64,000 nucleotides of DNA from Entomortierella parvispora E1425 (taxonomy: Eukaryota > Fungi > Mortierellomycota), in the NCBI GenBank assembly GCA_020891255.1, contig BQFW01000015.1, forward strand, positions 2,294,001 to 2,358,000, written 5' to 3'. Position numbers and translations under genes: made by a program. Each line of letters starts with the position of its first letter. The first letter of the stretch is position 1. The notes beneath the pieces were generated by a model that was not told the origin of the DNA, searched no databases, and saw nothing but the letters and a program-made list of their open reading frames with translations. Shown piece by piece: positions 21,166-26,705 of the stretch.

Positions 21166-23758
21166 ATGTCGACGAGAACCGCTTTCCGTCCACAGCAGCA
21201 ACAGCCTGGAAAAGCAGCATTGACAAGCTTCACGAAACGTAAACCCGTGAATACGGCCGCTTCTGGCACTCCTTCAACTGCCTCCCCGTCCTCGTCTTTG
21301 TCCTCATCGCCCATCTACTCTCCATCCCCGAGAGCAACAAATGGCGTTGTGTCCTCTCCCCCCCTCACTCCTCCTATTAATATACAGTCTATGGCAACGA
21401 CGATGGATTCACCCGTTGCTGGAGCGACCACGGCTGGACCGGGTCCTACAGTCATGGGCGGGATGGCCAAGACCTACGAAGAGACTCAGAATGAGCTGTT
21501 TGCGAAACTGGAGGCTCTGGCGACGACAATGAACCCTGTGCCAACGAAACCAGCAACAGATTCCATCGTCAGCAGCAGTAGCAGCCACAACAACCACTTT
21601 GGCAGTCATTTGACCGTGGCCAACTATGGCGGGACCAACAATGGTAACAAGATAATCTCCTTCAACAAGCAGCACTCGCCGTCACCAAGTCAATATTCTA
21701 TTCAGCAACACCTCAAGCAGACGCGCGGAGGCAATAGCCACAGCAGTCTCAGCCAGGGATATGGCGGCAATACCAGTAACTACAGCAACAACAGTACATA
21801 CCATGGAGCGTCTTCCACCGCCAGCATGTCTTCATACACCACACCCAAAACACCAGAAAGACCGCGCGAGTAAGGATGGCCTTTTGTTGTTGTTTTTTCT
21901 TGCTTGCCACTGTGGCTATTGTGGCTACTGTGGGAAGCAATCCTTGAATCATCCAGCCCTCTAACTTTCTAATCTTTCCTGATTTTAGACCTCGACGAAG
22001 AATCAACAGTGCTCAATTCAAAACACCTTCGGCTGCAGATATGACTGAGCTTGCCCAGGTGGTTGTCGCGAATGCAACCCCTCCAAAAGTTCCAAACAAG
22101 CTTCGGAAAAGGTAAAACGAGTGCCCATCTTACAAGGAAACAAGTTGAAGGCCACGTATCGTCCTCTAATTATTTTTATTGCCCGTGTAGAGCGAGTACA
22201 TTGAGTCTCACGGCCACGACTTTCCTCCCTCCCGGAAGCCAAAACTCCAGTATGATGGGCTTTACGCCTGCAGGGGCCCAGGATGCGATGGATTACGATT
22301 TCCGTCGACGGTACGAGGCTGCAGTCAAGGAAAGTAAGCAATGGGAGAAAAAGTACTCATCGGCCCAGAATCAGATCCATTACGAGCGAGAGCAGTGGGA
22401 GGCACGCTATGGGGCGCTGGAAAAGGCCTTTAAGGAATTGGAGATGAGCAAGACCGAAGCCAATGTGGACAAGATGAACACGCTTTTGGACACTGTCAAG
22501 GAACTTCAGATCGCAAACGAAGTGTTTCGAAAACAGTTGAAGGATGCAGGAGTGGAACCGGATCCCATGCCAGCTGCCAGTTATCATCCAGAACAGATCT
22601 TGGTCGGCGAGAACCTGGAGAGGACTTTTCTGGAAGAGAATGAGGTCCTCAAGGAAAAGTCGCTGATCACGAACCAAAAGATTGCTTGTCTGTCGACCGA
22701 GATCAGCGTAAGTTGGTGAATGAATGACATCCAAAGAAGAAGGTAAAAAAAAGAAAAAAAAAAAACTGAGACTGACGCGGAATGCTCCTCCATTCTCTAC
22801 ATCATAGAACACCGCGATTGCAATCTCGCAGACGATCAACTATGTCCAACTACGCTATCTGACACAGATGCTCGATGCTGCTGAGCATGTCTCGACTCAG
22901 AAGCGTTCCCGCGCCATGTCAAACACCTTCCTATCAGATATGCTCAGCCGCGGCGTCAAGAAGACACCTGGATCCACTTCAACCACCTTCCAGCCTGCCA
23001 AGCTCACAAGCACTATCGCCACTCAGACTCAGGCCTCGGCTTCCGAGCAACAACAAGAAGTTTTCTTACAACAAAATTTCAGAGGCGCCACCAATGCCGT
23101 CGGGAGTTCTACCTTTCGGCCATCGGAAGCCAAACTGAGCAAGACCTTCTCCTTCAGTTCAAGTCTTTTGAACTTGACAGGGCTAGGAGGCGGACACGGG
23201 GAGGTCGATATGATGTACCGATTGAAGGGTGGCGTCATGGATGATCGCTCTCAATTGTCGGGTCGGACTGGGATCCCACCTGTGATCGTGCAGGATCTGA
23301 AGGGGCGTCCTCCTTCACCAGAGTCCATCGATCGAGTGACCGCGAACAGGAAGACGCCCCCGCAACCTAAATTCCAGTATGCATCCCCGACCACGTCGCA
23401 GCTCAGGATCTTTGTACCGGATGCGTCAAGCCACATGTTTGGTCAAATGACAGCGTCCTCAGTCGGAAGTGGATCACAAACAGGAGGGAGTGTCCACAGT
23501 GCCTCCTCTGAGAGACCATTGAGACTGAGAAGGTCGTCCTCGGATGTCAGTCTGATGATGGTCGGTCAACACCAACAGCCTACCGTAGGGTTGTCGCCCC
23601 AGATGGAGAGGGTGGGAGGCAAGTACCCATACCCTTATGTCCATGCGTCGAGACCACCGAGTCAGAGGAGTACGAGAACAACCTCGAGCAGCCTTCACCG
23701 GACCATGAGCCAACAATTCTTGTCACCTGAGATGGCCTTCTTGTACAGCAAACAGTGA
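21166..23758 (+). CDS. Hypothetical protein: low-complexity Ser/Thr-rich termini with a central coiled-coil
   Basis: Long ORFs (21166-21873, about 22250-22710, 22868-23758) joined by GT-AG introns. Heptad-like segment YEAAVKESKQWEKKY...LLDTVKELQIANEVFRKQL. No family recognised. Confidence 0.7.
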
Positions 23759-24099
23759 TGTTCTTGTCTTGGAGATAATAAACCCTAGTGGTGAAATCCA
23801 GAAATTCCAAAAATTCCAAAAAAGGGGGGTTGGGGGGCTCATCAGCAACGTCTTGGCCACGCGTGTCAACCGCACAATTCAAATCGACAACCGCACGGAC
23901 ACATGGATAGCTGTCGTCGTTGTTTTCAGCGCGTCAAAAGAGCGTGTATCGTTGATCCTAGTTGAACCAAACTGCAGTTGTTTGACCATTGCACAAGAAT
24001 CCTGAATACAACCCTAAGCTCTGTGGAAGGCCGTGTCATGATTTTGTTGTCGTATAACAGTGTGTACCATTACATTCTTGAGACAGAGGACTTGATTAT

Positions 24100-25000
24100 T
24101 TAAACAAATCCATGGGCTATCACGGAATCGTGGGAGCTTTGAAAACGGATATCGACTTTGGAGGGTTGCTGACAGGTCCCCCTGAACAGCTACAATGGAT
24201 GCAATAAAACAAGTGATCAAAAGCGTAGGTTGCCGTGTCGAGTTCCATTCAGGACAAAAAACGAAACCCCTACAGTGGATGTGTGATTGACGGCTCGACG
24301 AGGATCGCGAGTGCACCAATTTACGAGCTAGAGGGGTAGAGCAGAAACACGAAGTGGCCATGTTAGTTACGATCTTACGAATGTCATGGACGTCAGAGTT
24401 ACAAATGGTTGGATGGTTTGAATGGGTAGAATGGACAAATTCGAGAAAGACAAGACCACTATGTTTGTTACAATCGCGTAATTGTCATGGTTGCGTCTTT
24501 GGGCGCAAGGGATTGGTTTAACTTACGGGCTGATTGGATAGAATAATACAATCAGCGAAAGACGCAGTTGAAATCTGGCAATTGTCATGGCTTCGTCGGT
24601 GCAATTGCCGTGTCCTCTTCGTTACGAGCAGTTGGTTTGTATACTTACAGGCTGATCGAGAGACGTTCGAATGTCAAGGACAGTTAGCTGACATTTTTTC
24701 TCTGTCTGTCTTCCTTGGCCCATGGAGGATTGAGACTGTTTCCCGCTTACTTTGCAGAGGTCGTGCACTAAGAAGCTTGGTATCTTGGAAGGGCTCTTGT
24801 TTTGAATGTTCAAGGCAACCACCTTCCACTCCCGACACTACAGCTGACAAAAGAACAATAATGGTTTGCGAGAGGCTTTTTGGAGTGCAGTAGCTCTTTT
24901 TCATTATTTTATTAGGAGGCGATGTTAGAAAGGAAGGGATAAATAATAGGACTGTGCTTGCATAGGGGGGCAAAAGTAGATGGATCGCGATTAATGACAT
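24100..25000 (-). other. Putative spliced transcript with three 3-nt microexons; possible 74-aa peptide or non-coding/UTR splice array
   Basis: Predicted exons 25000-24962, 24837-24751, 24651-24649, 24529-24527, 24327-24325 and 24189-24100. Donors are gcaagc, gtaagc, gtaagt, gtaagt and gtaaat, with branch-like gctaac, gctgat and actaac before three of the acceptors. All introns are phase 0 and the frame stays open. Confidence 0.55.
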
Positions 25001-25229
25001 GCTGGAGAAGGATGATTGAAATAAGACGAGAACGATGCTGGTGACAAAGAACAAGAAAAAGAAGAGAGCCCCTTCTTTTGTTCCTTCTGGTATATAATGA
25101 AAAGAAAACGGACGCTTCTCCTGTCGTTTTCCCTTCGGATATAATTTGGGGCTGGTAAGATCTCCTTCTGTGTCCATGATCGTGGAGGCACAGAGCGGAG
25201 CCTTTTTTTTGGTTGGTGTAGTTATTGAG

Positions 25230-26705
25230 TTATTGCAACCAGGGATCCGCGCAGGCCTCTGCAGCAGAGGGCCGGAGCTCGGCCGTTAGGTTCATCAATC
25301 GCTGAGTGAAGGCAATGTACTCGCGCGACATCCCTGACGATTCCAGTGCGGCCCAGTTGGGTGGAGATTGAGCCTCGAGGGCGTCGTGGGTGTGATAAGG
25401 GTATATTCCACTGGCGCTATTGTCGACGAGCAAAAATAGTAGGAAGCGTTAGGAACAGTGCCTGTCTTCATCCATTTGCACCGAGAAAGAAGATCGCCAA
25501 ACCCCCCCCCCCCCCGAAGAGAAAAAAGAGGAGGGATCAACTTACACAACAAACATGGTCACGCCCAAACTCCAGATATCGCAAGCGCGATAGTTGATCC
25601 ATTCACGACGACGGATCCGCTTCATTTTTCGGACAACCTCGGGGGCCGCGTAGAGCGGGGTGCCCACAGGTTTTCGACCACTGTTACAATCGTGCTCGAC
25701 GGCCAGGCCCCAATCGGCCAAGAAGGCATCAAAGCGATGATCGAAATTGTAAAGAGTGGCCGAATCCATGGACGATCGACCATCGGTCGTGTCCATGTCC
25801 ATATAAGAACTTTCGTTTGCAAAGGTACTGCTCAGAATGCTAGAGTCATCGTCCACATGACGCAACGACCGACTGTTGTGGTTACGGTTGCGACGGCTGC
25901 TGTTGTTGCCCGTCAAATGCAAAGGGCTCTTTTTGCCCTCGGTCTTGTTGCATCCATTGCTACCTGTCTGCTCATTGGGTCTCAACCAATCCTTCCTGGT
26001 ACGGAGCAAAATATTCTCGGGCTATGTTCATAAATACACTCTGCTGTTAGTGTCAGGAACCACAAGAGGGCCTTCAATTGCAAGACAAGGGTAGGATCGC
26101 CTTACCTTGATATCACGATGGGTAATATCGTGGCTGTGTGCGTATTTCAAACATTCAAAGATGGGTTTGAGAATATGTCGGATCTCCTCTTCTCGCATGT
26201 TGATGCCATTCGAGTACGAGTTCAGGTCCGATTGCGCCAGCTCCATCACAAAGTAAAACTTTGTTGCCGTCTCGACCACCCGGATCATCTTGCAGATACC
26301 CGGTCCGTCCTTGAGGTAGTCGATAAACCAGGCTTCGTTCAACAACCGTCGGTTCTTGATCTCCTGCGTAGAGTCTTCATTCACAAAGCCGAGACGACGT
26401 GTCACGGTCTTGTAGATCACCTTGATGGCCAGATCTTGACCTGTCACGAGATCGACTCCTTTGTACACGTCTGCATGGTGTCCTTTACCCAGGACCTGGC
26501 CCTTGAACAACTTGTAGGAGTCGGCCAAAATCTTTGTCTTTTCCAACCAGTTGTTTTTGGTCTATTGGATGATTCAAGGATTGCCACCAAAAAGGAGAGC
26601 CGTTAGAAAATGGGTGAAGCAATAAAGGGCTTTTTTTGAGGGGGCTTGTGGGAAAACTCCTTACACTCCGACAGTACACCCAGTTAGGAGGTCTAGGATA
26701 AACAT
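25230..26705 (-). CDS. Ser/Thr protein kinase (CAMK-like) with a large insert before the DFG-equivalent motif
   Basis: LGKGHHADV, LAIK, HRDIK|PENILL (intron 26022-26105), ADWG, GTPLYAAPE, CDIWSLGVT and RPSAAEACADPWL. The start exon (ATG 26705) is tentative. Confidence 0.85.

Follow-up and report, generated by a model that had tools for sequence, protein, structure and literature searches.

Does an apparently empty gap between two convergent genes hide a gene whose exons are only three nucleotides (nt) long? The question is raised by positions 24100-25000 of the window, that is, the whole 64,000-nt stretch analysed here (contig BQFW01000015.1 of the fungus Entomortierella parvispora E1425, positions 2,294,001 to 2,358,000). 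For the minus strand of this gap a first-pass annotation, made from the sequence without database searches, had proposed an independent gene with three consecutive 3-nt microexons. Comparison with the rest of the genome points to a different answer. The segment 23880-24662 (minus strand) is probably, with a likelihood that we would put at roughly 0.7, a 5'-truncated and strongly diverged paralogue of a lineage-specific family of genes built from tandem introns, and is now a relic. The observed part of this explanation consists of the architecture of the family, the homology of the window copy to it and the pattern of conservation among the repeated units.

On the minus strand the three trinucleotides in question are CCT (24649-24651), flanked by ...gatcag and gtaagt; CCC (24527-24529), flanked by ...aatcag and gtaagt; and CTC (24325-24327), flanked by ...ctctag and gtaaat. 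Re-reading of the sequence gave the same intron lengths as the first-pass annotation (99, 119, 199 and 135 nt), its translations were reproduced when each exon was translated singly, and all of its proposed introns are in phase 0 for the exons as drawn. The motif AGNNNGTAAGT occurs twice in the window, both times at this locus, against an expectation of 0.77; at least two copies were also found in 23 of 100 shuffles, so that the motif count by itself carries no significance. The non-random character of the CCT and CCC junctions comes instead from their homology to the intron units of the family. These two microexons are true family junctions, whereas the third, CTC, turned out to be the homologue of the start of the family's terminal exon.

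The family was found by searching the genome of the organism (38.9 Mb, 20 contigs) at the DNA level. Positions 24100-25000 as query yielded short matches grouped at two other loci; a second search, seeded with three units from one of these loci, retrieved arrays at eight loci, the window copy being the weakest match. Two of the eight are located on contig C8 (2817890-2819992 and 3058802-3061772), one on C11 (1529642-1531329) and five on C13 (253130-253766, 809843-812960, 853310-854560, 917110-918410 and 1843563-1848937). In each array, units of ~113 nt follow one another head to tail; they start with GTAAG, GTACG or GTATG, contain a perfect (A)ACTAAC ~48 nt before their end, followed by a pyrimidine tract, and finish with CAG or TAG. 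Parsing with a position weight matrix gave 159 junctions, almost all of the form AG/NNN/GT (slashes mark splice boundaries), with one 6-nt spacer and a few broken junctions in two loci. The arrays hold 5, 10, 11, 15, 18, 28, 28 and 48 spacers, respectively in ascending order, and the largest shows higher-order repeats. All 42 genome matches to a 38-nt core of the unit (up to three mismatches) fall inside arrays; therefore, the unit is not a dispersed introner. Two more diverged members, L060 on contig C1 and L061 on contig C15, were reached via the signal-peptide exon described below. The core idea of the first-pass annotation, that introns of spliceosomal appearance form a hidden array with 3-nt exons between them, is thereby borne out at 10 other loci, with a longest run of 48 consecutive 3-nt spacers, and its remark that standard gene finders overlook such an array was upheld.

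The reading grammar of the family is apparent from its intact members. Upstream of seven of the eight arrays lie a promoter, a 5' untranslated region (UTR) and a 62-nt exon with an ATG, all conserved; in the eighth (C13:253130) this exon is deleted. The exon reads ATG AAR ATC ... GCT GCY CCA NN/GTAAGT, ending two bases into a codon (phase 2), and encodes MKI(E/Q/K)FLLVLVAFLG(L/V)(T/A)IAAP, a typical secretion signal. When translation is followed from this ATG, base 1 of each 3-nt exon completes one codon and bases 2 and 3 open the next, and the phase-2 products are free of stops up to a homologous 'C AAA (AAA) TAG' or TAA site in six of the seven arrays. In C8b (L040, the 28-exon array at C8:3058802-3061772) a TAA is built from two consecutive 3-nt exons just ahead of that site (CAA/ATA/A.. 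giving AAA TAA); three further intron units follow this phase-2 stop. The terminal exon of the seventh array, C13b, was missed by the automatic parse, and manual reading leads to a TAG in the variant start CGACAACTAG. The mature peptides predicted in this way have 11 to 50 residues and are locus-specific, mostly K- or KK-ending and ordinary-looking, that of C13:917110 being ...ILDLTAIDIDLKK. A phase-0 reading of the same arrays, the frame adopted in the first-pass annotation, gives implausible runs of R, P, H and Q.

We propose that an intact member would run from a TATA-bearing promoter through the 62-nt signal-peptide exon (phase 2) and 10 to 48 modules to the terminal exon. Each module would pair a 3-nt exon with a single spliceosomal intron of ~110 nt, every codon being split 2+1, and the spliced messenger RNA (mRNA) would specify a signal peptide followed by 11 to 50 residues and K or KK. 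Such an array would grow by tandem duplication of 'intron + 3 nt', the two variable exon bases diverging later.

The two further members, L060 and L061, differ in how much of this layout they retain. L060 (C1:~2309500-2311850, minus strand) has diverged units with ACTAAT branch sites and GTAAGT donors, and its 3-nt spacers include ACG, CTG, CGG, TTT, CGA, CAT and CCT. L061 (C15:~2454000-2455604, minus strand), apparently an old member, is on the same contig as the window but outside it, 137 kb away from the window locus. Its signal-peptide exon is 78% identical to that of the family and is likewise 62 nt long and in phase 2. The introns that follow are unrelated, non-repeated and of varying length, the exons between them are of ~3, 6, 9 and 18 nt, and its tail is barely alignable, keeping only the GGATTTGTTTCAA motif. 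If L061 is real, the micro-exon layout survives longer than the likeness among its introns.

Column entropies were computed on 148 aligned units (116 columns, 2 bits maximum). The splice-signal columns (GT, CTAAC and AG) are the most conserved of the alignment, with 0.20/0.14/0.10 bits for G/T/A of the donor, 0.06/0.06/0.39/0.00/0.48 bits for the branch site CTAAC and 0.06/0.00 bits for the acceptor AG. The highest entropies (1.92-1.96 bits) belong to spacer bases 2 and 3, which are codon positions 1 and 2, while spacer base 1, mostly C, has 0.7 bits, similar to the average intron column. Freely varying codon positions 1 and 2 beside fixed splice signals and a fixed length of 3 nt are, to judge from the alignment, what is expected of a spliced peptide-coding array and not of an unspliced minisatellite. 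We infer from these DNA features that the family arrays are transcribed and spliced; a stranded RNA sequencing run for strain E1425, DRA013164, is listed in the genome announcement (PMC8759367).

The same data bear on the possibility that the arrays are plain minisatellites, the unit being derived from one duplicated intron, the junctions unspliced and the intron look merely inherited. The arrays clearly expand by tandem duplication, the 48-unit array has higher-order repeats, and a protein word search and metagenome scans for the family (see below) were blank, all of which would suit a minisatellite. We nevertheless regard this explanation as improbable, since the 116 columns have their lowest entropies at the splice signals and their highest at spacer bases 2 and 3, and since, although the units contain indels elsewhere, the spacer measures 3 nt (once 6) in nearly all of the 159 junctions. 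Furthermore, the signal-peptide exon and the position of the stop are conserved, and the old L061, with its non-repeated introns, still carries tiny exons.

Parts of the intron interior are conserved as well, namely GA.GA at unit positions 33-37 and CATGACAATTGC. Over unit positions 31-52 (for example, window positions 24599-24575) the stretch ACGACGAAGACATGACAATTGC is far better kept than the neighbouring columns, its two A columns having 0.06 bits; no structure is predicted for it, and it might perhaps be an intronic splicing signal. Conserved intron interiors would also be found in a transcript whose introns give rise to small RNAs of snoRNA-like or mirtron-like type and in which the 3-nt exons are incidental, an alternative that the first-pass annotation had raised. 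RNAalifold, however, placed no consensus pairs in 34 units, searches of ten family loci against Rfam returned nothing at gathering score, the weak Rfam matches in 23000-26500 (E <= 10) included none of relevance, and C/D and H/ACA boxes are absent. Since a small-RNA host would also account neither for the signal-peptide exon and the fixed stop nor for the hypervariability of spacer bases 2 and 3, we consider it exceedingly improbable.

The family units allowed the window copy to be dissected. A profile of the 148 units, run on the whole window with nhmmer, matched 24649-24600, 24599-24529, 24528-24420 and 24388-24336 (E = 9e-8 to 2.5e-5), with no other match within the 64 kb, and in blastn the copy matches all eight arrays. 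It comprises three or four decayed units and a family tail of ~450 nt. At its 5' limit stands a truncated unit end including the acceptor cag (24652-24662, minus strand, as are all features of the copy), where blastn matches to six paralogous arrays start (24660-24662); in 24960-24640 the unit profile found nothing upstream of ~24662. There follow the 3-nt exon CCT (24649-24651, in the context cag/CCT/gtaagt), which is of the C-first spacer type seen in the family arrays, and intron unit 2 (24530-24648, 119 nt), with a GTAAGT donor and a CAG acceptor. The first two nhmmer matches correspond to unit positions 3-53 and 31-114, so that this intron, 69% identical to the unit consensus, carries a 23-nt internal duplication. 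Its family CTAAC region is deleted; a CTGAT at 24551-24555 could act as a stand-in branch site. Beyond the exon CCC (24527-24529), a family-type junction cag/CCC/gtaagt, lies intron 3 (24328-24526, 199 nt), which the other two nhmmer matches (E of 9e-8 and 4e-7, respectively) and hmmalign resolve into two fused units. At the inner junction (~24405-24424) AG and GT are both lost, and in the first unit the branch site has changed to CAAAC; the outer GTAAGT donor, a perfect AACTAAC (24362-24368) and the TAG acceptor are retained. Tandem Repeats Finder reported nothing in the region because the window units are too diverged.

Although these units match the consensus at only 64-69% identity, the two kept junctions are perfect cag/NNN/gtaagt. 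At an identity of ~0.66 per site we estimate the chance of keeping both sides of the two junctions at ~0.003, that is, (0.66^2 x 0.66^5)^2. All signals needed by the present three introns are canonical, whereas the ones that the fusion rendered dispensable are decayed, a pattern suggesting that the window copy belonged to a spliced transcript over much of its past, most simply as part of a read-through transcript or 3' UTR of the kinase gene located upstream.

The 3' part of the copy shows where the proposed gene model fails. In the tail alignment the window sequence tag/CTCGTAAATTGGTGCACT aligns without gaps to the family cag/CAAATAGGTTGGGGCACT, so that the window's 'C TCG TAA' (24321-24327) matches the family terminal-exon start 'C AAA TAG', next to which the family has GTTGG. 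The window TAA (24321-24323) occupies the family stop position in phase 2, and translation from 24326 gives S*; it is a positional match only, as no open reading frame (ORF) leads into the terminal exon. What had been taken for a donor, gtaaat after CTC, is accordingly the family stop region. The acceptor of the presumed 135-nt intron, ttgtag/CTG, has its AG solely in the window and in one of the eight paralogues, the others having AT, and the last exon of 30 codons is left without support, the terminal exon carrying the family stop.

Past the stop, the family tail, presumably a 3' UTR (23880-24320), is 57-66% identical to all eight paralogous tails, which extend ~450-600 nt after their stops. 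The homology runs from the last branch site to ~23880, with the best block at 24047-24195 (~70% identity, E down to 7e-16). The window copy is the most diverged of all, and in a tree of the tails its branch is by far the longest (0.47 changes per site); in the tail and the extra 3' flank its closest relative is L060. Substitutions in the tail are distributed over the codon positions as 21/27/23, with no periodicity. A coding tail was considered and rejected: a frame is open in all copies round a shared motif, but codon periodicity is lacking and the window frame differs. Conservation in the tail peaks in two stretches, AGACGAAATCC and GGATTTGTTT (at 24146-24157 and 24102-24112 on the minus strand), which are complementary and common to all eight tails, and would pair as a helix of 11-12 bp around a ~40-nt loop. 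The helix is nearly invariant, which makes covariation uninformative; in the window copy both bases of one pair differ (GU in place of UA).

Whereas the 3' end of the copy is readily recognised, its 5' end is missing. A profile of seven paralogous 5' regions, spanning promoter, 5' UTR, signal-peptide exon and first intron, matched nothing in the whole window except the unit-like 3' half of the first intron, and local alignment of 25230-24651 to each paralogous 5' region scored no better than shuffles. The family frame meets a stop five codons upstream of the donor at 24750. With this in-frame stop and no signal-peptide exon, no family-type product is possible. The absence of the 5' exon is, on the available comparison, a loss and not divergence past recognition, because the older L061, with its barely alignable tail, still has a signal-peptide exon of 78% identity.

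The segments upstream of the array are not related to the family. Of the 'intron 1' of the first-pass annotation (24750-24652) only the last ~10 nt are unit-derived; its body (24663-24750, minus strand) is non-family, has a GTAAGC donor (24745-24750) and a CTAAC (24683-24687), and could act as an intron if transcribed. The exons drawn before it, an 87-nt exon and a first exon with a GC donor joined by a GC-AG intron (24751-25000, minus strand), have no homologue in the 5' region of the family and no relatives. Their distance from the stop codon of an upstream kinase gene, which has the same orientation, is 230-480 nt, or 140-480 nt when the TATATA is included, and they are most likely 3' UTR of this gene or intergenic. 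The ORFs of the kinase contain HRDIK, DWG and APE-type motifs. Positions 25545-25416 form its last intron, and the C-terminal exon ends in ...ADPWLQ followed by the stop codon TAA (25231-25233, minus strand), ~570 nt before the start of the window copy and 480 nt before the donor at 24750. Where the last intron of the kinase meets its last exon, at 25350-25462 (minus strand), Rfam gives a weak snR190-like match with 22 bits and an E of 0.03, which falls short of the gathering score and is most likely spurious.

The proximity of the kinase gene brings in another possibility, one already listed in the first-pass annotation, that the relic is now a spliced 3' UTR or read-through extension of the kinase mRNA, where it could couple the level of this mRNA to splicing or to nonsense-mediated decay. 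Such a role would describe the present use of the sequence and is compatible with its origin as a relic. The two share a strand, the kinase stop is only 480 nt before the first donor, the 5' profile found no family promoter in between, and every signal required for the three introns is canonical; GTAAGC at 24745-24750 is the sole strong donor from the kinase stop to the array. On the other hand, a TATATA (~25090-25098) and an AATAAA (~24916-24921) intervene, so that the kinase mRNA may end earlier, and the 3' UTR would measure ~0.9 kb after splicing, which is long for a fungus. We therefore hold this use of the relic to be possible, albeit on the unlikely side.

Between the kinase and the array lies a 167-amino-acid (aa) ORF (25177-24674, minus strand), which starts 54 nt after the kinase stop, runs through the 24750 donor and contains three hydrophobic stretches. 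It has no paralogue in the genome and no relatives in a word search of 5.8 billion proteins, and among eight flanking ORFs searched against Pfam it produced the only match, a sub-threshold one to DUF5378. As a gene in its own right it was dropped for lack of paralogues and relatives, and is probably an artefact of the pyrimidine-rich strand.

Several observations weigh against the relic interpretation and the spliced coding family on which it builds. Since spacer base 1 is mostly C, and C at codon position 3 excludes most stops, stop-free arrays are weak evidence for coding. A protein word search with the 46-aa ORF that holds the family signal-peptide exon found no match, nor did metagenome scans with a 22-nt core of that exon and a 20-nt core of the intron. 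The argument from kept and lost splice signals is a post hoc one, and the same pattern could arise through gene conversion by other copies, so that it is to be taken as a lead and not as a result. Finally, the ORFs 25177-24674 and 24361-24014 share one frame once the three introns are removed, as would fit a live gene.

Such a gene would have acquired a new first exon, with transcription starting after the TATATA, and would encode a secreted, cysteine-containing protein of ~160 aa. Translation would begin at the ATG at 24904 (MKKSYCTPKSLSQTIIVLLSAVVSG...), the first exon would end in phase 1 at 24751, the 3-nt exons would fall within T-S-P, and the frame would continue to 24014. The shared frame, which includes the 115-aa tail ORF (24014-24361), the hydrophobic, signal-like N-terminus and the kept splice signals speak for this model. 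The 5' ORF, however, is the one without relatives in the genome or among the 5.8 billion proteins and with a sub-threshold Pfam match only; the tail is homologous to post-stop sequence in every paralogue, its frame is not common to the paralogues and lacks codon periodicity, and the pyrimidine-rich strand inflates the length of ORFs. We find a live gene of this kind quite improbable.

Very improbable, in our view, is the gene model proposed at the outset, an independent phase-0 gene in which single-codon cassettes for P, P and L would be combined into isoforms differing by one residue. Its exons do translate as claimed, and its introns are all in phase 0. Against it, the third microexon and the fourth intron conflict with the family alignment, the acceptor of that intron is not conserved and the frame of the family is phase 2; moreover, for its first exons neither a link to the family nor any relatives were found, and the combination of MSLIAIHLLLPPY with a GC donor is ad hoc. 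The initial observation is partly confirmed, and the gene model derived from it is wrong in its frame, its ends and its third microexon.

How might a relic of the family have come to lie here? The window copy, C8b and L060 share sequence past the tail that corresponds to the C-terminus of a convergent plus-strand ORF ending at 23758. A check across the paralogues showed this C-terminus to be common to the C8b and C1 copies only; therefore, the micro-exon gene and its tail-to-tail neighbour were copied as a block. The neighbour itself (ORF 22868-23758, plus strand) has no Pfam domain, and its part 23334-23758 is kept beside the C8b and C1 copies at 67-81% DNA identity. There is no kinase upstream of C8b. 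The 5' break point of the duplication would have been inside the array, or the 5' part would have been deleted later; either way the promoter, the signal-peptide exon and the greater part of the array would be absent from the window copy, whether removed or never acquired. It would retain the two junctions CCT and CCC, the fused two-unit intron, the stop-bearing terminal exon and the tail, and the expected spliced string would be an exon end followed by CCT, CCC and CTCGTAAATT. The window copy may be described as a beheaded relic, perhaps still spliced within another transcript.

Among known systems, intact members of the family most closely recall, at the DNA level, the micro-exon genes (MEGs) of Schistosoma mansoni, in which a signal-peptide exon is likewise followed by many symmetric micro-exons. 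MEGs encode secreted products with a 5' signal peptide, have exons of 3-81 bp in multiples of three and form lineage-specific families that are poorly annotated by standard gene finders, and their splicing is documented (PMC10526429). In the fungal family, as read from the DNA, the internal exons are nearly all exactly 3 nt, as opposed to 3-81 bp; the introns are ~110-nt tandem copies, whereas those of MEGs are long and unrelated; and codons are split 2+1 at every junction. The resemblance to MEGs is one of architecture, with no sequence relationship, and the window copy does not share the signal-peptide exon. Introner-like elements are near-identical spliceosomal introns, recently multiplied in one genome, scattered over many unrelated genes and with stable predicted structures (PMC3609843, PMC4457414). 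The fungal arrays share with them the multiplication of introns within a genome, but all 42 core matches of the family unit fall in head-to-tail arrays, and the unit lacks a consensus structure.

Introns can also be gained by tandem genomic duplication across AG/GT, in which the duplicated segment brings its own splice sites and the frame is undisturbed (PMC3443670). That model covers single gains, whereas in this family a whole intron plus three bases is repeated up to 48 times; tandem duplication is the likely generating mechanism, with one codon added per event. The first-pass annotation had also considered a recursive-splicing ratchet. Ratchet points in animals are zero-length exons inside very long introns, and the arrays resemble them in that acceptor and donor stand nearly back to back, so that the splicing steps must be ordered. 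At the window locus, however, three bases that would be coding are retained between AG and GT, and the introns are short (99-199 nt), which does not agree with a ratchet. Literature searches on 3-nt exon arrays, tandem introns and Mortierella micro-exons returned nothing comparable in fungi.

That the family is really spliced as its DNA implies, with secreted peptides assembled from up to 48 single-codon exons and with the window array long kept under selection for splicing after its coding function was lost, is a combined claim to which we give somewhat less than an even chance. If spliced, the family would represent the most extreme micro-exon architecture found in the searchable literature and a concrete, datable case of intron gain via tandem duplication. 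It would also offer a natural system for studying how the spliceosome copes with 3-nt exons, and a hard test of intron definition, as the footprints of U1 and of the 3' splice-site machinery overlap on a 3-nt exon. The window locus carries a warning for annotation, in that splice motifs alone are no ground for calling a stretch a protein-coding gene. As the deepest-branching, beheaded member of the family it would show how such genes die, in that the 5' exon goes missing, adjacent introns merge when an AG and a GT are lost as a pair, and a branch site disappears. The better preservation of its junctions than overall divergence predicts gives an indirect evolutionary hint of use. If the combined claim is true, the arrays would constitute a new way to grow and diversify secreted peptides residue by residue, and would stay selected for splicing after their coding role is lost, for example once captured in the 3' UTR of a kinase gene.

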